Origin: Lepidodermella squamata
Taxonomy: Eukaryota > Animalia > Gastrotricha
Direction: 5' to 3'
Length of the DNA stretch: 64,000 nt
Assembly: GCA_047495785.1 (NCBI GenBank)
Contig: JBLDXI010000028.1
Coordinates: 1,054,001-1,118,000 of the forward strand
The notes below the pieces were generated by a model that was not told where the DNA came from, ran no database searches, and saw nothing but the letters and a program-made list of their open reading frames with translations. This document shows positions 37,838-54,674 of the stretch, piece by piece (position 1 is the first letter of the stretch; every line of letters begins with the position of its first letter). The position numbers and the translations under genes were made by a program.

Positions 37838-40800
37838 TTATGATACGGGACATTTCGCGCTACCACAAGCTGCATGTCGTTCCACTCTACTGCGTCGGTG
37901 ACTCCGCGGTTGCTCTACAACTCGAGCAGCCTGGCCATTGGGCACAACCTCGATGTGCTCAACTTCAGTTGGCGTCGATGCCTCAGAGCGGCTATCCTTA
38001 GCCGGCGAGTGATGCTGGTTGTAGTTCGCAATCTGCGTCGAGCAACGGCTGTTGGGCGTTAGGTTAGATATCGATGAGCTCATCACGCTTTGCGACCTAT
38101 TCTGGTCATCGGCTGTCAAAAATGCGTTCATAAGTTGCGACATTGGAATAGCTTCGCCACTCTCTGCAGCCTGCTTCATCAACTACAAAAAAGACAATAA
38201 ATTATTCAAAATTTAAAAAATTTCAATTTTCAATTTTAATTTTTTTTTTAAATTATGGAAATAACTGTACCTGAGGAATTTTAGGGTCCAGAGAGTTGTC
38301 TGGGATTTTAGACACCCTAGTGGTTATTTCCTGGGGTATAGCCGAGCCAGTTGTCGAAGTTCGAGCCGAAGTACCCTCGGACGGCACCGAGCTGTGTTGA
38401 GCAAGTCGGCGTTTAGTACGAGCCGCAGCCATCTCCTGCTTCTTTGTCCTCCGCCCGATTGACCAAACCGTGAATAAATCAACATTTTCGATAGTTGATA
38501 GCACCTTCATTTTAAAAAATAGTTGAAAATTATTTCTCAAAAATTATTATTACAGGCAATTGAATAGTCACAAGAGGCCGGCTGTCGTAATTGATGGCGA
38601 ATTCGTTCTTTTTCAGTTCATTCACAACATTTTCCGTGACAGTAACAGTATTTGGCTATGAAAATTGAAAATTTTAAATTTAATTTTTTTCAAAATTTAA
38701 TTCATACGATAGCAATTTGAGAAATTCGTTGTGATATAGTGACTGGACGTCCACAGGCCAAAAATCGCGGAATTGTCACGCCGAGACATGTCCCAATAAC
38801 AGGTCCAATGTCGCACGCGACTTGAACATCCGTGACCATAGATTTGCGCATCCGGCGCCCGTTGATAATATTTTGACTCGCCTCGCCAGATCGTGCCGTT
38901 AGGTTCGACATTGAATCGTTGCCAACTTCGGCAGCATCGATTAGTTCTTCGGCGATAAGAACCGCTAAATTGGCAGGCAGGGTGGCGTGAAACGGCAGGC
39001 CGACGATAATTTGGTAATCATTAGCGAAGCTGAGAATCTATGCGCAAAAAAATCATAAAAAACGGGATTTTTTATTTTTTTTAAATCGGAAATTTTGGAT
39101 ATCAATTTTCAATTTTTCAATAATTTTTTAATATTAATTTTAATATTATACAAATGTGATTTTTTTCAAATTTCTCACCTTGCAAACGTTGTATTTGATT
39201 GTTACCGCATCGAATTTCCGGAAAAGAGAATTCAAAGTCATGATAGCTTCCTTGACCATATGCGGCGTTGTGACCGTTTTGAAGTTCAACGCGCACGTGA
39301 TTATGGCTACTTTATTCGAATACTAAGAAAAATAATGAAAATAATTGATAGTAGCCGATGAAATTCATCTTTTACATGAACTCGAGTGAGGTTATCAGGC
39401 GATTTTAGAACAAAACTCGGAATAGCTTCTTCGAGTAGGGCAACGCGTCTTTGGCGGTAGGTATTAGACTCCTGGTTTAGCGAGTCGAGTTTATTGCTAA
39501 TTTTAGCCTCCTGAACCATTAGCGGGTCTTTGCCGATGTCACGATGATGCCGCATGGTGATCAACTCGCGGCTTGAATCCATCATCGATAAATCATGAAT
39601 TTTCAGTCCAAGAAGATTCAGCTCTTTCAAATTATCGATCTTAAAAAATATAAGAAAATTTAAATCAATATTTCAGTGGAAGAAACTTACGATAGGCATG
39701 GCAATGAACATGAGACAGTCCCATTCGTCAAAATGAATCATTTGGCCCCGAAGTCGAAGGTGGATAAATCGCTCAATTCGATCTCCAACTGTGTCGTGAC
39801 TCTGGTGCGTTGAAGGCCTGTGAAGGGCCCCGGGCCCAACTGCCAGATCATCAAAATGACCTTGAATCGGCTGAAGCGAATGAACTTCAAACACGTTGTT
39901 CGCAAAATCCAAAACCTGGAGCGACAAAATTGAAAAAATTCCGAAAATACCGAAAAAACCCGGCAATACCCGGTAATACCCGAATTTCGAGATTTTGAAA
40001 ACTTCTGTTTTCAAGTCATCTCCTGTCTCCTTGGTGCTTGGTGTTTCGGGTATTTTCGGGTATTTTCGGGTGTTTTCGGGTATTGCCGGTATTTTCATGA
40101 TTTTTCAGTAATTTCTTACATTCGCCCACGTGCACGGAATAGCAGGTCGTATCAGCTCGAATACTTCATTAAAATCCCGGCCCACAACCCCAGGCAGAGA
40201 GAAGTTGACGCCACGCCCGGCCGAGACAATTTCAAACTCGCGATTGAGTATAATGTAGAAGGAAATTTTGTCGTACAGCGTTTCAGGGTTCGTTTTCTGC
40301 TGCCTGATTGGCGAATTAATATCGCTAGGTATGCTCGGCAACTTTTGCAGAATTTTCGAATTAGCAACCAGAGCTTGTAATACAGGATTCTCGCCAGGTG
40401 ATGCCAAGGTAGGGGGCGGGGATGGTTCGCGGAGTTGAAGCGGGGCTTGGACCTTCATCGCACGGCGATTGATATAGCCGGAATTATCGAAATCCAACCG
40501 CATTAGGACGGAATATTTGCCGCGGCTATCGATGACTTGCGATTGAATTCCGACTGTGATCGAAATGCCGTAGTAGAGCCGAGCGACTTCAGATAACTGC
40601 CCGGCGACGTAGCCGTGTAAATTGCCCCGAATCGATCGGTAACAAATCGTCATGCCGTTGCAGTCTTCGGTAACAACGGAAAAAGACGGCGCTTTGATTT
40701 TCGGATAGGTCCCTCGGAAGTATTCATGCAAGTTGTCGAGGCCGAGTACGAAATCGCTGAGATTTCGGCCAAGCACGCGGAGAAGCGTTTCGTAGCCGGC

Positions 40801-41473
40801 TTGGTGCGTGTATCGAACGAAAAAATGGCCGAATTGCTCCATGACCTGGTCGAGGCGGAGATTGCACGCGTCGGCCGTGCATTGCGCGAGGCGAACGAGC
40901 AATTTATCACTGTAAAGTTGGTGAATTGAAAATCCAGCTCGGCCGAGCCTGCAAATTTTCAGAGAAAATTATTAGAAAATTATTAGAATTATTAGAAAAA
41001 TTGCAGTAACTTGGAACTAAAGTTTCTTTCAATTAAAGAGAATAAGCGGAAAACTTCAGAATCTTATATTTCGGTACTTCGAATATCTGCTGGAAGTTAG
41101 CGGCCTATTTTCAGCTGCCCACTTCAGTAGAGAAGAAACTATAGGATTAGGGTTGGGATTGGGATTGGGATTGGGATTAGGATTGGGATTGGGATTGGGG
41201 TTAGGTTTAGGATTAGGGTTAGGGTTGGGTATTGACTGCCAACTTCTACAAGCTAACCCGATAGCTAACCATCTTCGATTTTTGCTATGGCAAAGTTACC
41301 CCGCTGCCTACAGTCCCCCAGTTGACGGTATGCTTCGAGACTGATTAAATTTACCCAATTCTGGCATCGATTGCTCCGCTACCAGCCGCTTGGGCCAGCA
41401 CAGTTTGCGCAATATCGGCCGAAAACTTGGACGAAATGAACTCGAGTGCAGCTTGCAGCAATAATCCGTACAT
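37838..41473 (-). CDS. Atypical soluble guanylyl cyclase-like protein A (H-NOX + PAS + coiled coil + degenerate cyclase), ~9 exons
   Basis: MYGLLLQ start at 41473; GLDNLHEY, KAPSF, YRSIR; LRLRGQM; GLKIHDLSMMDSSREL; cyclase-like exons 39322-39179 and 39037-38708. Confidence 0.85.
39940..40096. repeat. Intronic inverted array of ~10-bp units (ataccc(g)gaaa / tttcgggtat)
   Basis: Two tandem arms in opposite orientation around a short spacer; a similar motif pair occurs at ~55070-55135. Confidence 0.6.
41143..41230 (+). repeat. Telomere-variant hexamer tract (TTGGGA/TTAGGA/TTAGGG) in intron 1 of sGC-like A, followed by a MITE family A right-end fragment (to ~41329)
   Basis: ~14 hexamers; ...cccagttgacggta terminus at ~41329. 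Confidence 0.8.
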
Positions 41474-42174
41474 TTTTCACGGTAAAATCGCGCCGTGTTT
41501 AATATTATTTTAGGTAAATATATATATTAAGGTTATTTCAGGTATTTCGGTGATAGTCTGTTTGATTTGTCACAAAATTATAGCCTCATAACAAACAGAC
41601 AGCGTGATTCGTCTCGTGTGTAATTAGCAACTATAGAGAAATTAATTTCGAGGCCCTCGACAATTAATCACCCAGTCGCACTTCGGCGACTTCTAAGCGC
41701 GATTTTCAAAGTCTTCAACGCGCTAATTAAATGCGACAATAATTCCACAGATTGTTTTTTCTATGGAAACCGGCATGAGGAGAGCTGATAAAATCTCTAA
41801 CCGAGGATATAAAATAGATCGCGAAGCCTTTAACAGTTAATATTATTTGATTGAAGTATTTGGCGGTGAAATTGCCATAACGTTATATATTATTTGACAA
41901 TCGTCATGTGATACTTAATGATTCTGAATAAAAGTGGCCGTTCAAAAATAGCCAACCGCTTTGTTGAGCTTTTATTTGATCGAGTATAGTACTCTGTCTT
42001 CTGTCAACCTGTTGTGAACGTAGTGCGAACAAATGAAAAGTGAAGAGAACGGATATTTTGATATCAGCAAAAAAGATTCGGCAGGTTATACTGTTTTACA
42101 GGACTTGAGTAGTATAGCAATACCGGAATATAAAGTCGTTATATAAAATAATTTTTTAATTCATTTAATTCGTG

Positions 42175-42711
42175 GTAAGACTTTTCAGCAGTGACACTTC
42201 AGCAAATGACGGTCAAATCAGCAGTGACTTTTCATCAGTGACACATTGTCAGTAAAAAATCCATAAAAATCAAATTTGTGTATTAATTTAAATAATTCTT
42301 GTAGACAAGTGAGCAGTGTCATTTCAGCAGCGACAAATGAGCTAGTGACACTTCATCAATTTTTATTCATTTATCTCGGGCATTGAACTTGCACTTTTTG
42401 AGCTCAACTTCAATGCAGCGCATAGCCCCCCTGCTGAATACGGCTGAAATTCTGTTGATGAATTTATCTCCGCGAAATGTCACCGCGATAAAAATGATGA
42501 ATTTGGAAAAATTTAGGATAAATTATCAAAAAATCACTGCTGACTGGTCAAATGAGCAGGGACTTTTCATCAGTGACAAATGAGCAGTGACATTTGAGCT
42601 GTGACATTTGCGCAGTGTCTCAAATCATCAGTGTCTCTGATTTGTCACTGATGAAAAGTCCCTGCTCATTTGACCATCATTTGCTGAAATGTCACTGCTG
42701 AAAAGTCGTAC
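42175..42711. mobile_element. MITE with ~70 bp TIRs and internal cagtgaca repeats
   Basis: gacttttcagcagtgacacttcagcaaatgacggtcaaat vs rc of atttgaccatcatttgctgaaatgtcactgctgaaaagtc; TSD not clear. Confidence 0.75.
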
Positions 42712-43178
42712 AACCATTTTTCTTTTATTTTTTTCAAAAAATATTTTATATTATTATATTTTAACGATTTACATTTGATATAACGACGTTTATATTCCGA
42801 TAAACTATTGATAGAGCATCTATCTATACCGTCATCCCCGACATATGATGGTAATGCAACAATATAAACGACTAAGACGTTAAGAAGACAAATTTGGTTG
42901 CCTATCATTTATTCTAGTCAGCTCTGTGTTTATCAGACAAGTAATGCCTATAGAAGCTTCTACACGAAAAACCCTTGATAAGTATAAAAAGAATGAAACC
43001 ACCTCAGTCATCTTCCACTTTATTTCACAATAGGTACACAAAATAGGTATTTGGTTACAATTGAAAGATCAGAGTGAAAGGACATAAGCAGAAAGAACGA
43101 GATTGCTTGCGCCTACCGGTTGATATTAAGGAACAAAGTATTAGTAATAAATGGATGACGTTGTGTTTCGAAGCATAA

Positions 43179-44040
43179 TTATGGACTGTGCTTCTCGTTC
43201 TCAGTTGGTTCGCGAGTCTTGGTGCCTTCAAACAAGATGACGGGACTCTCCCCTTTTGCTCGCAACAGTCGGTACAACAGACGCTTCTGTAAAACAGGCA
43301 AATCACCTGGAATGACTGGTCTAAAATCGTTTTTGGTTCGAAGGAGCTGAATAAGGTGGGAAGTTTGAGATGAATCACCGTAGGTTTCCACTAGCCTGCC
43401 TTGAGTTGGAGATCGCTCATCTGGAGCATTAACGAGCAATCGTTCTCGCCAATGCTCATCAAAAACAGGACATGTATCATAATGGTTCAGAGCAGCATTG
43501 ACACTCGGAATCTGAACTCCGCAACCCAGCCGCCCATGCCATTCTTGGAACTGCTCAGCGAAGTTTTCAATCAATTTTCGACAACCCATTACAGCAGCAA
43601 GTGAGGCCGCATTATCCGGGTCGACTTCACCTACGATACCTAAAAAATACAGATGTAAATCAATGTATTGGAAATAACAAATAAATAGACAAACCTTGTG
43701 ACGTTAGTGTTGTAAGTGGAGACAGCGCCTTCACAATGATTGGAGAATCGTAGCTATTAACAAGACCATCCGGCTGACCAGCGTAAATTGTTGTCACCAG
43801 TTGATTACGAGGCAGCGCTACGGCGTCAGAAGGGCGAATGAAGATATTGATCAAGCCAAGCGATACATGTCCAAGTTCAGGATGAAGCTTCTTCTGAATG
43901 GCTTTGATAAGATTATAGACGTTTGCATTATCCGGAACTTCTACTTTAATGGGAAAACCAGCTGCAAATTTCACCCAGAATAAAGGCATACTTGCTAACA
44001 CACCAAAGAATGCAAAGATTCCTAGACGCAATAAAATCAT
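43179..44040 (-). CDS. Crinkler (CRN)-like protein: signal peptide, ubiquitin-like CRN N-terminal domain, unknown C-terminal domain; exons 44040-43695, 43639-43179
   Basis: MILLRLGIFAFFGVLAS then FWVKF..PIKVEVPDNANVYNLIKAIQKKL.PEL.HV.L..I.I ... NSYDSPIIVKA; a phase-1 intron joins the two track ORFs. Confidence 0.6.
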
Positions 44041-44061
44041 TATATTTCTCACTTAGTGAGT

Positions 44062-44680: not shown

Positions 44681-45437
44681 TATGAATCAGAAATTCACAA
44701 AACTTGGTAAATACCAGTCATTTACGACGGTGAATCCGACAAAATTACTCTTGAGGTCATGGGACGCGCCCTACCTGCTCAGGTAAGCCACCTTGCCTGG
44801 ATTTTTCGATATACACCTATCCAGGTGGTGCTGATGAAGAAATAAAAAGCACCATCGTAATCAGCTTCATTTGTTACATTATATAACAAATTCTCACGTT
44901 TATTATGTGCTGCTGTCAGATATAACAAATGGGGTCCCAAATCGATGCAGCTTTTTTACATGGAAAAAACTGAACTTAACAGCATAAGTTGGCAGCACGC
45001 CAACGGAAGGTGATACGAAGGTAATTTTTGTTTCTATCAACTAGTATTGGTCCGTAAAAATCCATAACAAATGATGAGACTTCCAGGGTAAGCGGTTATT
45101 GCTGATGAAAACACGCTGCTAGGTTCCGTTGGGTCTTTATTCGGTTTACTGTTGGACTTTTTCAGACGTGAAGGCTATCGTTATCGATAAATATCTGGTG
45201 AATTTTTCGTCACTCTTGGCGGTCTCTTTTCCAACAGATGGTCTGATTAAGAGCAGCAAAGCTATCGGTGTCATAATATGAGCTTTCAGCAATAATAAAC
45301 TAAAATGAATTTTTATCACAAATAACTTATGGTGATTGATCGTTAATCAAAATTTCCGAACATCTGCCCAATAAAGTACCTATGAATAACGAAAGCAAGT
45401 TTCCTCATTTTAAACAGCTGAAATTATAAGCAGTAAA

Positions 45438-48400
45438 ATGATCATGAGTTTACATGTTACTCTGGTGATTTTGAGCCACCTTTCTCACCTTACCTGCGAT
45501 TCTGTCTCTCCAGATCCTGTACTGCTAGTACTCTACAACAAACAATTCGGACCTCACAGCGTCATCAAAGGGCCGATTCTCGCCTACACATTCAGCGGAT
45601 ATGCCGGCGTCATGCGGCAAGCTGGCCCCTTTGGGTACCTGGACACCGCTTATTCCCTGACACAAATAAGCTCCTACACGAGTGATAGTATAATAGCGGA
45701 CTTCCCAGATATTGCGACATATTATATTCGCGACAGTTATTTCAAGTCAGCCGAGTTGACAATTACATTCTTCTTCTATAGTGATACTGAAGGTTTGAAA
45801 AGCGGAGGGCTAATGAAGTTCTCCGACGAATGGCACACGATTTACGTTGGGTTGAATGCATTTTATAGAACGTTAGAAATAGGAGCGCGCCAGGCTAATG
45901 ATGACTTAGGCACGAATACAGTGAAAACAAATTTGCCGCGCGAACTTCTCCAGACTAGAAAATGGCACTTCATTAGCATTGTTAGGATGTCGCTAAAAAG
46001 TTTGGTAGTCTATCTAGCGACAGAGCCGACTTATGAACTGAGAAATATTGCGGTTCTCGATCTGAGATTAATTCACTATGGCGGCACGTCTTATGTTAAT
46101 CGACAGTTAATGATAGGCTATGCTCCCTATAGCATTATGGGAACAGGAGTCAGTGGCGTAACTCAACGTGAAGGATTCGCATGCCTGGCGTGTCACAATA
46201 CAACTCTCCCGGAAAACATCCTTCCGTCGTTGATAGAAAACTGCCGAAACATCAGCGAACATACCGCAAAGCAGCAGCTTGGTATATGATTCTCAAGGCG
46301 TCTAAACTCTTTCAATTTATAAATGCTATAGTTAAAGTTGTTGGGACTTACACGTATCCGTCTATTGAATGGACAAATCTGCTATTGGATCCTTCCAGCG
46401 ACATGTTTCGAAAAGCAATGTCAAACGTAGTTTCCCAGGTTGTTTCTGACCGTTACCCTTCTGACCTGCCATTTTGATTCTTAAACGTCAAACTTATTCT
46501 AGATAAATCAGCAGTTGTTGAATACATCTTTCGGAAATGTCCGAACTTCAGTCTATCGGTTTTCAATGGGACCTGCTGCGACAGTCGAAGCTTTGTACAT
46601 GTCTTACATCCAGCGTTCATACAAATTCAACGCAGAGCTGAGCGAAACAGACGCCATCAAAGAACTCAATCGATTTGTTTCGAACAACACTCTGACTATA
46701 TCATCGGTTTCACTAGGTAGTTTTTCCAGGGCTGCAAAATCTGCAGAACTTCCCGCGCAGTGATTTTAATTTCCCGATAAACCCGCTCGCTCGCTGCGCT
46801 CGCTCGCGGAATGTGCCTTTATAACTTTTCCTTATCGCTTATATTTCTGTGGGTTATTTCCTGTAAAGCCTCGCGCGGCGGAAAAATTGTAAGAAACATC
46901 AGTATTTTGGAGTGAGAAAATGTCTGAAAATACTTGATTCGGCACATTTTTAAATTTTTATTAACATTTTTAGGCCTAAATTGGTGGCCAGATTTCGCAT
47001 TTCATACGGCTTGATACTCGTATAATTCACATATTTAGGGTAACCAAAAACTTGTGGCTAAATATCGTAATTACCCAAATATTCTTAATTACGCAGATAA
47101 ACCAAGTTCTTCAATTTCAGGAATTTCAAAAAACAAATTAGATATTCGGATTCAGCGCAAAAAGTTACCCCACCCTGCAAATTTGCGCACAGTTATCGTG
47201 AAAATTGGTTGAGAAATAGGCGGAAACAAATTTCAATTTTTGCACGTGTGCGCGCGCGTGTGCGTGCGTGTGTGCTCCACAAAAATTCGCTCACTCGCAC
47301 TCGCCCGCTCCACTTCACTTTTCAAAGCAGTTGTGCGCTGTTGTGCGCGCGCGCTCGCTGATTTGTGCGCGCACACAGTTACAAGCAAACTTTCAGTCCG
47401 CATTTCTCCCTCATTTTCAAACATAGCTGCGCGCAAATTGGCAGGAATGCCCAACTTTTTACGCTGAATCGGAATATCTAATTTGTTTTTTGAAATTTCT
47501 AACCGTTATTATCACCGATTTCGCGTTAGTTAAACAGAAGTTATTATTGGAATTAGATAGGAAAGTCATTCGTGAATTGCTAATTAGTTCAATCACTTAA
47601 TTATTGAAATAAATTATCGGTGGAAGATTAATTACTTGTTAGATTTCCCGCTGATTACCCTTATTTCCCGCTGATTTTTGGCGATTTCTGAGCATTTTCA
47701 CATCTCTATTTCCCAAAAATTTCCCGCTGCGCGTAAAAATTTCCCGCGCAGCCACTGCGCCATTTTTGCAGATTTTGCACCCCTGAGTTTTTCAATAGTG
47801 TTATTGTTGTTGCTTTTATAGAGAAACATGATTTAAAGAAGTCACCTCTTGTTAAGCTAACTCTTTCGCATTAGCTAAAATTGAATGCTGAAGAAAGCAT
47901 ATTACAGATAGTATAATCTCCTGACAGGAATCGAAATGCCAAGATCTTTTGCTTTGGTCGGCTTCTGGCCGCTTTCTTACGCTTATTTATTGAGCGACTT
48001 GGGTCCGCGACGTCTTGTCAACTCTTACACGAGCGATTCTGACTTTGCAACACCCGCTTTATTCCAAGAGTGGACTGGCAGATGGTTCAGAAAAGAGCTT
48101 TTCTCTGTTGCTGACCTCAAGTACCCTATTAGAGGAATGGAAGGCTTCGCGGTTTCATTCTATTTTCTCCAAAGTCAGATTGGGTCAGTATTGACAGGAA
48201 TCTTGGAGATCAAACCCAACGTACTTCATATTGGTTATAAGTATCCTGATGCGTTGCTCGTTTCAGTTACCAACATGAAGGAACCGATCATTGTACCGGG
48301 TATTATCCGTATTTCTGAATGGGTTTTCATTGGGCTCGTATTTTCGAACAAACCAAAAACAACGTGGCTGAGAATTTATAATAATCACCATTACGTTTTC

Positions 48401-50642
48401 GAAGTGCAAAATGCACCCGTCGAAGTTGCATCAACTTGGTGGCTGAATTCTACGGGATTGACTGTTGGGTTTTCATCCAAATTTTCGCTAGGCACTTCGA
48501 TCGGCGCCGATGCAATCGCCGGACTAACAATTTATGCAGCCGATTTAGCTGCTGATGAGTTAAATCAAGTGCAGGAAGCTTTTCGACTAGTCGTTTCTAG
48601 GAAATGTTGCGGTGTCGGGAATATCCAGCCCTTAGCGCCGATAGTTACTAGGCCAACAGCAGTGCTCCCCGAGCAGGTTCCATTCATCAAGGTCTTTCCT
48701 GGAAATGACATATCGACGTGCATTGGAGCCATCGTTGATGACGAGATAATTTTAACAACTGCAACGTGTAAAGGCGCAATGCTTTCAGCTCTCAACTATT
48801 CCCTTGTCGATGAGTTACTCGTCGCCCGTTACTCGAAAGAGGATTCTTCCAAAATTCAACCTGTTTGTTTGCCAACATGCTGTGATCAGAACATAACGTG
48901 GAGCGAATCGGTTCAAGTTGTCGGCTTGCCCGAGACGAGCTCGAAAAAGTACGTATATGTTACCGGAATTGTTCTTTCGCAGGCAGAATGCTCAGCGAGA
49001 GTGAATGCGTCTTCCGACGAAAACAGCATTTGCTTTTACACAAAAATATTGCTTGAGCTAAATTGCGACTTCCTCGATGGGGCTGTGCTGTTACGTTCAA
49101 TCAATGGGGACAGCGTGACGGGCAAAACAAGACGCTACGTTTTGGCAAGATTAATCCTTAACTCTTAAAATTGCCAGTTTAACGATTTATTATAGGCTGG
49201 AATTTACGTCAAAGCTCTAAACGCGGATTGCAAACCGGGAAAACCTATTATTTTCAAGAATATCTTCGCGAAAATAGAGCACATCAGGCGATCAGCATCG
49301 TGCCTCAGCATGTCTCAAGGCCAACAATGTCCAATGACCTACCGGACTGTACCGACATTGCCGCCATCTTTCACGAGGACCACGAAAGCTGCAAGTTTTG
49401 AAGAAAGCACTACACCCTATTTGACCATTATTGAAAGCGGACAATGTAAGGCCTAAAGATAATTTATACTAGTAAAATTATTCCAATTATTTCTTCGTCA
49501 AATAGCGCCTATGATTGAAATCATAATCAGTGTAGTAGCTGCCGCCGGTCTTGTTGTCGCATCCTCTGTATTCTGCTACAAGAGGAGAGCGAGACAACTT
49601 GTAAAAAAGCTAGCAGGGTTAAAATCAGCGACATCATCTTCAGTCGCACCATCAAACTACATCGTTGCTGTAGGTGATCTCGCAAGTCTTCTTAGGGACC
49701 TCACCGAGTCCGAGGAACTGATAAGTGAGTTTGAAGGAATCGGCTTGAATCCAGAATTTGTGGAAGTTCTAGAGCTAGTTGGGGAGGGCCAATTTGGATC
49801 CGTGCATAAAGGTTTACTACAACAGGGCGATAACGAACAGCGTCTAGAAATAGCTTTGAAATGTACAAAAACATCAGCTGAAGTTGGAGATCTCGTCGCT
49901 TTTCTAAAAGAAGCAGTAATAATGAAGGACTTTCAACACGACAACGTTTTGCCGCTGATTGGCGTTGCTGCTGTCTACAACAAGCCCAGCATTGTTGTAC
50001 CATTCATGGCAAATGGCAGTCTTAACCGATACTTGAGGATGAATACTGATGCCAGTGGCGGATCATCTCCTGAGACACTCATCGACTATTGTCTCCAGGT
50101 GTGCAAGGGCATGGTGTATTTATCGTCGAAAAATTGCCTGCATCGTGACCTGGCGTGTCGCAATGTTCTCGTCTCCGACGATCGAGTGCTGAAGATCTGC
50201 GATTTCGGCATGTCACGCAAGGTTGACAGTGAGCGGTTGTACTACAAACTGACTAACAATGGCCAACTTATGATTCCGGTCCGGTGGTATCCTCCAGAAG
50301 CAATTCACAAGTTCACCTTCGAGCCGAAAAGTGATGTTTGGTCCTTCGGCGTTACGATGTGGGAAATATTTTCAGGTAAGCCTTGCCTTTTACTGTACCT
50401 TTTATATCTAGAGGATGCTCTTTCTTCGAGCAGAATGCAAGAGCGTTCCGTACGAAGACATCGACACTGCAGAGGTCATACTTCGGATTGTTCACGGTCT
50501 GCGCCTCAGTCAGCCTGAGAAGTGTCCAACTGCAATTTATGATCATATCATGACCAAGTGCTGGGCAAGCGAGCCACGAGACAGGCCTACCTTCGGCGAG
50601 ATTGAAGGGCTCATCGGGGATCGGGGATCTGTCGTTGCCTGA
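45438..50642 (+). CDS. Receptor tyrosine kinase, Met-like kinase domain, with LamG-SEA-LamG-inactive trypsin-like ectodomain; exons 45438-46281, 46332-46438, 46503-46716, 47928-49144, 49196-49445, 49506-50375, 50434-50642
   Basis: Signal peptide; WHFISIV and WVFIGLV LamG-like; LLDPSSDMF SEA-like; CIGAIVDDEIILTTATC, IQPVCLP, LAGI protease-like; TM then KRRAR; GEGQFG, IALK, IMKDFQH, HRDLACRN, DFG, PVRWYPPE. Confidence 0.82.
46727..47785. mobile_element. hAT-type non-autonomous element in RTK intron 3
   Basis: 8-bp TSD agtttttc (46719-46726, 47786-47793); TIR cagggctgcaaaatctgca / tgcagattttgcacccctg; internal ~46 bp inverted repeat 47121-47166 / 47453-47499. Confidence 0.9.
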
Positions 50643-50815
50643 TAACTATATCCAAGCTTTATTTTAGATCAAAACACTTGATTTATTGTTAACCATTATT
50701 TCTGAGCCATACTTCATCGTCACAGTTTATGTTACAAGTGATGATTAGCCGTGATACATTAAGAATAAGTAATTAGGGCAAATTTAGGACAAAAACGACA
50801 GCGAACAGAAAAATA

Positions 50816-53800
50816 TCACGATATTGTACACGAAGCATTGCGTGGCATGCATTGCCCTTTTCCGTTATTATTGACAACAGGGACACAGCCCAGAGTGGTT
50901 TGCCCGTCTGTTCGGCTGTTATTGGACGCCAGACGAGCCTGAGCCGCGTCAACATCCAAAAACTCAACTACGCCCAATTCACTCAAACTCTCCACCCCGG
51001 TTTTGAACGGGCAAGTCCCACTAAGGGCTGGGGCGAATTTCGCCAGCTCGCCCCCGTCGAAACTAGGCCGCCGACTCGATAGCGAGTCGTCTGGGGTATC
51101 TGAGCTGCGGACAGGGTTTTCTAGTGTATCTTTAGCCTCATCCTCCTCTATGACTGGGGTTTCCTCATCGATTATAACTTCATCATCGAATTCCACCGTT
51201 TCAAGCATTGACCTATGCCGAGAGGTCACAACATCTACGTTTTCGTCATCGTCATCTTCATTTTCGAAGGTGACCTTACTACCGGAAGCTGCGCTACTTT
51301 TGCTGAGCCGCGTTTCTTTCTCCAGCCGGCGTCTCTCGATTTTTTGCATGAAATCTAACAGGCCGGTGTTGTCTAGCGGTAGGGCTGTTTGGCGGCCGCT
51401 GATTAGCTGTTGATCTGATGTGGTTGATAGTAGCTGGGCTGTTCGACTTACCGGGCCAGAGTAGGCCGAATCACTCTCTGCGCCAAAAACTGACGAATCG
51501 CTATCCAATTGCTGGCCGGGATATCGGACAAGTTTAAACAGCTCGACACTTTTACGAACCTGAAAAACATAGCCAAAAAGGTGATTGCTGATTGCACACG
51601 TATGACGGACCAAGTATGACACGCAAATGCAATCTTGAGGTATAAGATGCCATTAGAATATTTTACTTCACGACAGGGAATTGAGAATTTCGGCTTCGCC
51701 AGTATTTTCGGGGCCTTTCGTGAGCTAAGACATAGATGTAGAAATGAGGTCTTTTAATTCCACAGCGATGATTAGATCCCAGGAGGGCTCTTATGGTTTG
51801 TTTTTTGCTAGCCCTGCTTTTTTCCATGTGATTTGTAGATCTACGTCACATTATTTGAAAATGTTCGGAATTTGTCACATTCGGAGCTCTCAATGACAAA
51901 CGTTCTGAAATTAACGTACCAAATATTCGGCACTTTGAATTTGCGAAAAATCGAAATTGTTCGCCGAATCGGTGGTGGCCAATACAACTTTCGCGTTCTC
52001 AGTTATCGCGATCGAATTCGTCTAAAACGCGAGAAAAAGCACGAAAATTCAATGAACTCGCGAAATGAGCTCACGCAAAGCCTCGCATAATTACGTGTTA
52101 GTTTAGCTAATCTTCTCATACCTGGCCGATAGTAGCAGCTAAATCGCGAGTGCATCGCAGTGATTCTCCGGCTATGCAATAGTAGTTCAAATTGCCGATC
52201 GAAGCTATCGAAGACGCCCCCTCGCCGCAATCGATAACTTGAAAATCCGTTTTGCAGATTAAAAAAAATCTTACAAATTTCCATACCAATTTGAAATTTC
52301 CCAGCTGGTATAGGTTTTTCATTCGAGGCTCGGCTCGATCCACTGGCTGGGGTCATATTTCCAAGATGAATACCTGATGGAGGCTTGTTGGCGCTAAAAA
52401 TCGCTTTAAATTCAGCCGAATGAACTAATTCGATCGCAGCTAAAATTATCGAATTAACAGGCTGTTTTTGCTCAAACGGCAGTCCGGCCGCTAGAGTCAC
52501 TTCATCAGCGAGCGAGGGTGTCTGAGAAAATTGAAAATTGAAACAAAACCGACGTGTCATCAAGTCGGGCGATAATAATTGACGCACTTTTGTCAAGTTG
52601 AATTTGTCACAAATTTTGTCGAGCTTCGCCGCGAAGCAATTCAGATGAGTGACATGTTGCTGAATCGACGATGCGTGGTTACTGCCGCTATTATTATCCC
52701 CGTCATCGAGGCGAGAAAAGTCGAAAATTATCGCCATAATTGCAACGAAGCCTTTGGTGACCTGTGTAAATAGCATATAGTTGAAATGTCCTGAAACATG
52801 TGTTCAAAATCAGCTGATCAATCAATGAAAAAAAAATTTTTGATTTTCAAATTTTCAAATTCTAGTATTTTTTTTAATTTTCAAATTAATAATTCAATTT
52901 AATTAATATATCTTTTCTTCTACAAAATTACTTCGACATTTATTGATTTTGGGTTATCCGAAACTTCTGAATAGCGAAGAACCAAATGCCTGGGGACAAC
53001 GGTCTGAAGTAAGCTTAGCCGTTCGCCCTGAAGTTGGAAAGCTCGTTCGAGGCAAAAGTCAATGTCAGAGTCCTTCAGAAAAAACAAAGGAAAATTTGAA
53101 GCAAATCAATAATATTGGGTTAATAAGTACAAATTTTGCCAATTCTTTACGATTTGAAGACAAATTTTTCGACAGTTGCCGGTGATAAGCAACACTGGTG
53201 ACAAAACGCGACGCGTCATTTTTCGACAAATCCGAGCCATTCAAACCGATATCGCGTAAATTGTTCATTTCCTCGAATCTGACAAAGCCAAATATGAGAT
53301 ATTTTAAGGAATAATTTTGTCCTTACAGTGGGACGCCATTGAATATCAGACAATTCGCGCTCTTGAAGAAGAAAACTTGGCCGCGGAGGCGTAAAATAAC
53401 AGACTCTTGATTTTTGGATTCACCCTTGTACGGAACTTGGAATTCGATAGTGAAAATGTTGTGCCCATTTCCTCCGATCTATTATAAGTAGAAAATGGCT
53501 TAAAATGGAAGACAATAGCTGAAAGCTGAAATATGACCAGCTTCAAATTTCACAAAAATTCAAATGAAATAACTAATTTTGTCCTGTTTACCTCAGCCCA
53601 AGACCAGGATGATCGTTTAGGTAAGGCTATTTTGCAAACAGATAGCAAACTTGATCCAAGAACCCCAGGTAACAGCTTCATCAGCGATTTGCCTATCGAA
53701 ACAATTTCCAGCTCGCTCTCGACAAACGCGATATGAAACGGCATCAAATCATCGAAAATGCAACTCGCCGATAGTTGCATTTTCTTCATCGAATCAACGT

Positions 53801-54440
53801 AGCACCGCGTTTTTTTGCGCTTCACATATTGGTCTAAATTATCGAAAATCAGCGTAATTATCGTTTCGATAAAATCATCATCGGAGGTTTCTTGCTCGAT
53901 TTTCGACTCGATCTTAATTCCGTAATATTTTTCAGCTACGGTGTTCATTAGCCCGGTCGCGAGGCAACTAAATCCAGTTCGGTTGGTTTTATACGAAATT
54001 TTCATGCCTTCCGGAGTTTGTTCTAAAACCGTGAATGACGGCGGTTGAATTCGCGGGAAACTGTGGCGTAAATATTCGTGTAGACAGTCGATATTTCTTA
54101 GAAAATCGGCGAAATCCCGGCCGAAAAAGTCGAGAAGCGGCTTGAAACCGGCGTCATTTGTTAGCAAATGCAGGAAATAATGGCTGACTTTCTGCAAAAC
54201 TTCACCCGGCGATAAGTTGGTGATGAGGCAAACGGCTTGAATCAGGCAATTCATAACATCATCCGGGTAGGATTGATAAATCGTAAAGCCGCGTTTGAAA
54301 ATTTGCCGAAATCGCGGCATCGAACTGTTCGACTCTCGCCGGTCAAGGCTATCGGCTGTATCGATAATTTCATCGACCACATCTGGCGGGAAATTTTCCG
54401 TTATATATTGCAATAAAGACTGCAACACAAGGCCATACAT
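50816..54440 (-). CDS. Atypical soluble guanylyl cyclase-like protein B (H-NOX + PAS + coiled coil + degenerate cyclase + long acidic tail), ~9 exons; last exon 51559-50816
   Basis: MYGLVLQ start at 54440; NIDCLHEY, QPPSF, YKTNR; LRLRGQV; GLNGSDLSKNDASR; cyclase-like HLNCFAAKLDKIC, TPSLADEV, YYCIAGESL; several intron positions shared with gene A. Confidence 0.8.
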
Positions 54441-54674
54441 GGTTGATAAAAAAAAATTCAGTGTTGGGTCAGCCAACGAAAAAACACTGATAAAACTGAA
54501 GCCATTTGAGGCTCGAGACAGGATTAAACACCCCCTCATAAATCGGGTGCAAATCACTTGTTTTATTCGCAATGAAAACAAAAAAATCGTAATAAAAAAA
54601 GAAATCATTTGACTTTAATTAACAGTGAATGAATGAATCGATCGATAAATTTTGAAATATATGAGGTCGGATAT

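Follow-up and report, generated by a model that had tools for sequence, protein, structure and literature searches.

This study concerns a gene at 45438-50642 on the forward strand of a 64,000-nucleotide (nt) stretch of Lepidodermella squamata DNA (contig JBLDXI010000028.1, positions 1,054,001 to 1,118,000; this whole 64-kb stretch is called the window below, and coordinates refer to it unless another contig is named). The gene encodes a predicted receptor tyrosine kinase (RTK) whose extracellular part contains a trypsin-like domain that has lost its catalytic residues. We consider it quite likely that this one gene specifies a type I RTK, specific to a sparsely sampled animal lineage, in which an ectodomain block from a secreted protein family, together with a SEA-like insert, is combined with a MET/TAM-like kinase (TAM, Axl/Mer/Tyro3).

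Gene structure and membrane topology

The gene model was derived by reading the DNA directly, together with the list of open reading frames (ORFs) and splice-site tests. Seven exons were found to splice into a single coding sequence (CDS) of 3711 nt without internal stops, which encodes a protein of 1236 amino acids (aa). Introns 1 to 6 measured 50, 64, 1211, 51, 60, and 58 nt, and their phases were 1, 0, 1, 0, 1, and 1, respectively. GT-AG boundaries were present in five of the six introns; the remaining one, intron 4 (49145-49195), is of the GC-AG type (donor TTG/GCAAGA). Both sites of intron 5 (49446-49505), donor GTAAGG and acceptor ATAG, are canonical. Transcript evidence came from two sequencing runs that contain the stretch, X1 (labelled 'RNA?', 2015) and X2; with 0.91 of the sampled words present, X2 probably represents the source genome itself or a conspecific. 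Over 45200-50900, X1 contigs were mostly at least 99% identical to the window. In these contigs, the exon 4-5 junction was spliced (...CGCTACGTTTTG/GCTGGAATTTACGT, with loose ends at 49146/49195), which confirmed the GC donor, and the exon 6-7 junction was also spliced (...GGAAATATTTTCAG/AATGC, with a loose end at 50431). With the stop-free CDS, its splice sites, and the two junctions seen in X1, the locus is confirmed as a real gene, predicted to encode a single spliced receptor protein, as had been proposed in the initial annotation of a region that the ORF list presents in pieces. One X1 contig omits 85 nt of exon 7 between two GATC repeats (50544-50630); the ends of this gap are non-canonical, so that an artefact of assembly or template switching is the probable cause.

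As shown in Table 1, the predicted protein consists, in order, of a signal peptide, a LamG_3/ConA-like domain (LamG1), a SEA-like insert of ~107 aa, a second LamG_3-like domain (LamG2), a pseudo-protease, a stalk, a transmembrane (TM) helix, and a kinase domain. The TM segment (aa 883-901) gave the highest Kyte-Doolittle score of any 19-residue window in the protein (2.53), and all but one of the nine N-x-S/T sequons are located N-terminal to it, on the ectodomain side. Two general hallmarks of an RTK, an intact kinase domain and a lone TM helix between that kinase and an ectodomain with a signal-peptide-like N-terminus, are present. These sequence features mark the predicted protein as a type I single-pass RTK.

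Table 1. Positions of the RTK gene, the predicted domains of its product, and associated features (window coordinates unless a contig is named; aa, residues of the predicted protein)
Feature	Position	Strand	Residues (aa)	Details
Exon 1	45438-46281	+
Exon 2	46332-46438	+
Exon 3	46503-46716	+
Exon 4	47928-49144	+
Exon 5	49196-49445	+
Exon 6	49506-50375	+
Intron 6	50376-50433			Splits the kinase domain
Exon 7	50434-50642	+		Stop codon 50640-50642
Signal-peptide-like N-terminus	In exon 1	+	1-20	Hydrophobic stretch aligning with signal peptides of relatives
First LamG_3/ConA-like domain	45615-46253	+	~60-272	Exon 1; alignment with relatives, ESM features
SEA-like insert, ~107 aa	46332-46438 and 46503-46716	+		Exons 2-3; symmetric 1-1 module with GT-AG sites
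Second LamG_3/ConA-like domain	47928-48598	+	~395-612	First part of exon 4; relatives, AlphaFold2, Foldseek
Trypsin-like pseudo-protease	48605-49333	+	~615-840	Pfam Trypsin; split by GC-AG intron 4
Ser/Thr/Pro-rich stalk	49334-49513	+	841-880	By composition; 40 aa, crosses intron 5
Single TM helix	49514-49576	+	881-901	Followed by KRRAR
Tyrosine kinase domain	49757-50621	+	~962-1230	PF07714; split by intron 6
Relatives-only profile match			97-273	10.8 bits; LamG1
Relatives-only profile match			460-675	73 bits; LamG2, linker, and start of the protease fold
Relatives-only profile match			701-840	24 bits; remaining protease fold and family C-terminal Cys pair; spans the exon 4/5 join
Secreted Laminin_G_3-(Laminin_G_3)-trypsin-like arrays	Contigs L001 5237-7662; L002 652-6981; L003 1356-4896; L004
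Terminal-inverted-repeat DNA transposon, ~1059 bp	46727-47785	None		Inside intron 3 (46717-47927)

The ectodomain and its secreted relatives

The sole direct Pfam match in the ectodomain was to Trypsin, at 22.6 bits (26.1 bits with a more closely trimmed query); the gathering score of this family is 20.6. By ESM features, all 100 of the 100 nearest clusters were Trypsin (best score, 0.95). A trypsin-like domain at ~48680-49290 had been part of the initial annotation; the domain itself stands, with a score above the gathering score, and its extent is revised to that given in Table 1. The domain was then compared, in one alignment, with its relatives and with an active protease (P0190, with motifs RIIGG, TAAHC, DVALIHL, and GDSGGP). 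His57 was found to be replaced by Thr (LTTATC) and Ser195 by Asp (FLDGAV), so that the two motifs from which inactivity had been predicted do sit at the catalytic positions. Moreover, the strand bearing Asp102 is deleted, and the N-terminal barrel has lost another ~25 residues; none of the three residues of the His57-Asp102-Ser195 triad of active S1 proteases is kept. An R/IVGG zymogen activation site was absent both from this domain and from every relative in the alignment with P0190. Judging by these substitutions, the trypsin-like domain is catalytically dead. Retained cysteines include the equivalents of C42-C58, C168-C182, and C191-C220, the VCLP cysteine, and a C-terminal Cys pair characteristic of the family. 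Given that these disulfides and family cysteines have been kept, a folded and constrained domain is favoured.

When exon 4 was searched with HMMER against 1.84 billion representative proteins, only three matches were obtained, with E values of 2e-7 to 1e-5. All three (P0001-P0003) are metagenomic ORFs that combine Laminin_G_3 with Trypsin, and their contigs contain tandem arrays of such genes, each gene encoding a signal peptide. P0189, a member of these arrays, comprises 746 aa in a single ORF and combines two Laminin_G_3 stretches with Trypsin. The array contigs derive from metagenomes ERZ23486787, ERZ27332993, and ERZ23486764, and the arrays look like an undescribed pseudo-protease family of a small eukaryote or animal. 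One of these contigs (L001) additionally carries a fragment of a Cys-loop channel. The organism from which the window derives, and its kin, are absent from the protein collections. A beta-catenin-like ORF elsewhere in the window (14027-15823, minus strand) has its best match, at 57% identity, in a metagenome ORF and reaches only ~45% with beta-catenin/plakoglobin of named animals.

The dead sites of the relatives have S, T, or N in place of His57 and E or Q in place of Ser195; with the receptor included, position 57 is S or T in six of the seven family members and position 195 is E, Q, or D. Since the relatives have lost these catalytic residues in similar fashion, the inactivation would be older than the fusion that gave rise to the receptor. 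The spliced receptor protein was searched with a profile made only from the relatives, and the matches are listed in Table 1. Homology between the secreted proteins (P0001-P0003 and P0189) and the receptor covers LamG2, the linker, and the entire pseudo-protease with its C-terminal Cys pair. Their dead sites are of the receptor's kind, and P0189 also has two LamG domains. In contrast, these proteins stand alone, without the SEA-like insert, stalk, TM helix, or kinase, and they retain a full N-terminal barrel; identity to the receptor is 21-25%, reaching 31% over local matches. The receptor thus looks like the product of a fusion, at phase-1 introns, between a secreted LamG-LamG-pseudoprotease block and a TM-kinase cassette. 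Exon shuffling, which had been suggested at the outset, is a good account of this arrangement: the SEA-like module has a phase-1 intron on either side, another such intron lies between the ectodomain and the TM-kinase part, and the LamG-LamG-pseudoprotease block occurs in stand-alone secreted genes. Shuffling of extracellular exons is classically recognized by symmetric phase-1 modules.

The remaining ectodomain parts were assigned largely through these relatives. Exon 1 gave no direct match in Pfam; the metagenomic relatives, themselves matched by Pfam, align with it collinearly from their signal peptide through their first Laminin_G_3 domain. When exon 1 was scored with a profile of the relatives' first LamG domains, it reached 10.4 bits, whereas the best of 1000 shuffles reached 7.3. 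The ESM features of exon 1 scored 0.97 to LamG_3 clusters, and 75 of the 100 nearest clusters were Laminin_G_3 only, with more combining it with other families. For LamG2, homology is to the LamG_3 portion of P0001-P0003, in which PF13385 is present. An AlphaFold2 (AF2) model of exon 4, built from seven sequences, had predicted local distance difference test (pLDDT) values of 72-85 across most of residues 70-220 of exon 4, falling to 54-65 over its residues 161-190. Foldseek matched the LamG2 model to the PTX3 pentraxin, the lectin-like subdomain of neurotoxin Hc, and sialidase lectin domains (E ~5e-7), and on the strength of this model the jelly-roll/ConA-like fold of LamG2 is confirmed. Both LamG calls of the initial annotation are therefore supported indirectly, via the relatives and the ESM features, and the fold has been recovered for the second only.

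The insert encoded by exons 2 and 3 lies at the point where LamG1 of the relatives passes directly into LamG2; the relatives do not have it. With phase-1 introns on both sides of the exon pair, skipping the two exons would preserve the reading frame. By ESM features of exon 3, SEA clusters were found at ranks 2-3, with a score of 0.85 and 24 of 100 hits. SEA was not found when exons 2 and 3 were searched as separate pieces against Pfam and PDB sequences, and the G/SVVV self-cleavage motif of SEA domains is not present, the matching stretch reading FSMGPAATV. Of the SEA call made at the outset there remains the ESM score, and the assignment of exons 2-3 to SEA is only a weak lead.

The kinase domain and comparison with known receptors

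The tyrosine kinase domain was matched by Pfam PF07714 at 2e-65 on exon 6 and at 4.4e-12 on exon 7. All of its catalytic motifs are intact (GEGQFGSV, IALK, HRDLACRN, DFG, the activation-loop YY, and PVRWYPPE). Among solved structures, the matches to a single kinase domain were MET (155 bits), MER (152 bits), JAK JH1 (117 bits), and EGFR (107 bits). Because the margin of MET over MER is small (~3 bits, as compared by PDB match scores), 'MET/TAM-like', rather than MET, would be a fair label for the kinase. The motifs IMKDF.H.NVL, VV.P.M, LQV.KGM.YL, and the activation-loop YY are shared with Met/Ron and the TAM receptors. The protein differs from these receptors in having WYPPE instead of W(M/I)A(L/I)E, in lacking Sema/PSI/IPT or Ig/FNIII domains by Pfam, in its unrelated ectodomain, and in the absence of a C-terminal bidentate docking site. 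No Pfam match to Sema, PSI, or IPT was obtained in any exon at E<=1. The protein ends ~6-15 residues past the kinase domain (the Pfam match runs to ~aa 1225, the domain is bounded at 1230, and the protein has 1236 residues), and its last tyrosine is Y1203; there is no docking tail and there are no C-terminal docking tyrosines. An intact kinase with Met/Ron-like signatures that align to MET, the lack of Sema/PSI/IPT, and the missing docking tail had all been noted in the initial annotation and were borne out here. Its designation 'Met-like RTK' holds for the kinase, which is nearest to MET/TAM, and does not extend to the protein: membership in the Met family was rejected, given that the Sema/PSI/IPT ectodomain and the C-terminal docking tyrosines are missing. 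At 50084, X2 has A and the window has G; this allelic difference would put N in place of D1071, a residue of the C-lobe of the kinase.

The nearest kinase among 5.8 billion clusters was that of a metagenomic ORF, P0008 (44% identity, E 1e-52). Its gene (contig L005, 45-1864) has a CUB-plus-TM exon upstream of the kinase. This small gene resembles the receptor in having the closest kinase, the WYPPE motif, and no tail, and differs from it in that the ectodomain is one CUB domain and the TM helix lies within the ectodomain exon. Since P0008 is joined to a CUB ectodomain, the same type of kinase would be attached to a different ectodomain in another organism. Contig L005 and contig L003, one of those with secreted arrays, derive from a single metagenome sample.

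Trypsin-fold domains at the cell surface and in growth-factor signalling have precedents. Type II transmembrane serine proteases display trypsin-fold together with SEA modules on the cell surface, and HGF, which undergoes two-chain activation, contains PAN and kringle domains. Matriptase and enteropeptidase (type II transmembrane serine proteases), as well as HGF/MSP, resemble the receptor in having a surface trypsin fold with a SEA-type module, or a dead protease in growth-factor signalling. The type II proteases, however, have the opposite topology and are catalytically active, and their pattern of a signal anchor with a membrane-proximal SEA is not seen here. A protease of this kind was rejected as an identity for the receptor, which is of type I topology and whose membrane-proximal domain is an inactive pseudo-protease. 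The analogy with matriptase drawn at the outset therefore fails: the protein is of type I, the SEA-like part is not adjacent to the membrane, and the SEA assignment is weak. The receptor likewise has none of the PAN, kringle, or two-chain features of HGF.

A closer parallel in concept is provided by the Venus kinase receptors, in which a sensor module of another protein class is fused to a TM-tyrosine-kinase cassette (PMC4026697). The concept of a foreign sensor on such a cassette is the same, whereas the sensor (Venus flytrap versus LamG/pseudo-protease) and the kinase (insulin-receptor-like versus MET/TAM-like) differ. Organism-specific tyrosine kinase families and domain shuffling have also been described (PMC8662651). 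A kinase with a related ectodomain was found neither in the exon 4 search of 1.84 billion representative proteins nor at 80 metagenomic kinase loci retrieved with the kinase exon; these loci were at most 40% identical over the full kinase match, with higher values only on short fragments. A metagenome scan with exon 4 alone produced no match, no paralog of the RTK gene was present within the window, and a literature search for RTKs with a trypsin or pseudo-protease ectodomain returned HGF/Met papers only. The initial annotation had not recognized the architecture from known families, and it was likewise not found in the databases and literature searched. As far as these searches reach, a pseudo-protease as the sensing domain of an RTK appears to be undescribed. 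RTK ectodomains have been repeatedly reshuffled in animals and their relatives; the architecture, new as far as the searches reach, fits this known habit of RTKs of swapping their outer domains.

Proposed mechanism, alternative explanations, and the surrounding locus

In the mechanism that we propose, the ectodomain would act as a non-catalytic recognition block, composed of a pair of ConA-like (LamG_3) jelly rolls plus a degenerate pseudo-protease of trypsin fold and descended from the secreted LamG-LamG-pseudoprotease family. The SEA-like module would have been inserted between the two LamG domains later than, or along with, the fusion. An O-glycosylatable stalk, together with the phase-1 introns, would link this block to the TM helix and to an active MET/TAM-like kinase. 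The lectin-like and pseudo-protease domains may bind an extracellular glycan or protein, and binding of this ligand would gather or dimerize the receptors and lead the kinases to trans-phosphorylate the activation-loop tyrosines Y1123/Y1124. Because a docking tail is absent, signalling is proposed to proceed via juxtamembrane or kinase-lobe tyrosines.

Several points weigh against this reading. Junctions 1-2, 2-3, 3-4, and 5-6, four of the six, are without RNA evidence among the contigs listed and were assigned by splice sites, phase, and intron size alone; among them is the key seam between the ectodomain and the TM-kinase part (5-6). X1 depth was zero over 45200-45963, which includes the first ~525 nt of exon 1, and the RNA nature of X1 is indicated only by its label. 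With regard to the domains, the AF2 model of exon 1/LamG1 was of low confidence (mean pLDDT 41), and pLDDT was ~25 over the pseudo-protease in the seven-sequence model, from which the C-terminal strands encoded by exon 5 had been left out. With ~40 residues of the N-terminal barrel absent, the pseudo-protease may not fold like a normal trypsin domain. The SEA identity is tentative, and the mechanism is an inference.

That junction 5-6 was not among the contigs listed would suit a two-gene explanation, in which exons 1-5 would encode a secreted LamG-(SEA)-LamG-pseudoprotease ending at a stop near 49454, and a separate membrane kinase would start from an ATG at 49511. The known ectodomain relatives are indeed all stand-alone secreted proteins that end soon after the conserved C-terminal Cys-Pro, and the TM-kinase ORF does open with ATG. 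However, the gap is merely 60 nt and leaves no space for a terminator and a promoter; it contains a strong GTAAGG donor and an ATAG acceptor, joins in frame, and is similar in size to the verified introns 4 and 6. Moreover, X1 depth was above zero in every 190-nt bin across the gap, the family's C-terminal Cys pair is followed here by the 40-aa Ser/Thr/Pro stalk that the secreted relatives do not have, and a TM kinase with neither ectodomain nor signal peptide would be unusual. We regard two genes as quite improbable. The low AF2 confidence and weak direct Pfam score of the pseudo-protease, the loss of the D102 strand within a deletion of ~40 residues from its N-terminal barrel, and the change of D1071 to N that the X2 difference at 50084 would cause would suit a relic, in which the pseudo-protease, and perhaps LamG1, is decaying without a binding role, with LamG2 working alone or the whole gene drifting to loss. 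Set against such decay are the three core trypsin disulfides, VCLP cysteine, and C-terminal Cys pair, all of them kept, the intact 3.7-kb reading frame, the spliced transcript, and the full set of kinase catalytic motifs, and we hold a relic to be improbable.

An explanation by a tethered ligand was also weighed. HGF, the ligand of Met, has a dead protease domain, and Gas6, a TAM ligand, has two LamG domains. With MET as the nearest kinase, and with the ligands of Met and TAM receptors using the same fold types as this ectodomain, the pseudo-protease might act in cis, as the HGF beta chain does on Met, with self-activation of the receptor, or its release by cleavage, as the outcome. Against this, Pfam shows no Sema/PSI/IPT to which the pseudo-protease could bind, and no kringle or PAN; an R/IVGG-type activation site is absent, and the SEA-like part is without the G/SVVV self-cleavage motif. 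The dead-site substitutions (H57T/S, S195D/E) match the secreted LamG-pseudoprotease family and not HGF, so that the inactivation would be independent of that of HGF. We consider a tethered ligand very improbable, and the HGF analogy raised in the initial annotation is not sustained: Sema, kringle, PAN, and the cleavage site are missing, and the dead site is unlike that of HGF. HGF-like two-chain activation was rejected, there being no activation cleavage site.

The reading of a secreted-family ectodomain captured by a TM-kinase cassette is retained. A wider and rather unlikely extension of it is that the secreted LamG-LamG-pseudoprotease proteins are an extracellular recognition or ligand family of an under-sampled animal lineage, of which the receptor is a captured member coupled directly to a MET/TAM-like kinase, and that the receptor represents a new class of RTK that senses by pseudo-protease and lectin-like domains. 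If this were true, folds that Met and TAM receptors encounter on the ligand side, in HGF and Gas6, would here be part of the receptor itself. With both the donor (an already inactive secreted LamG-pseudoprotease family) and the seams (phase-1 introns) visible, the gene would offer a clean, testable example of receptor assembly, and the receptor a route to asking what pseudo-proteases bind.

Intron 3 contains a DNA transposon with 22-nt terminal inverted repeats that are 91% complementary. The element is multicopy, with read depth up to 13x that of its flanks. An X2 contig joins 46718 to 47786 and lacks 1067 nt; 8 letters fit both sides, and these likely represent an 8-bp target duplication. 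Because this one X2 contig is without the element, the insertion is polymorphic. A second element, with 99-nt inverted arms (47119-47217 and 47402-47500), is nested in the transposon. Without the transposon, intron 3 would measure ~144 nt, and it is therefore only the transposon that makes this intron long. The RTK gene is located between minus-strand genes at 37838-44052 and 50816-54608, and its stop codon and the end of the downstream ORF, which is convergent with it, are ~170 nt apart.

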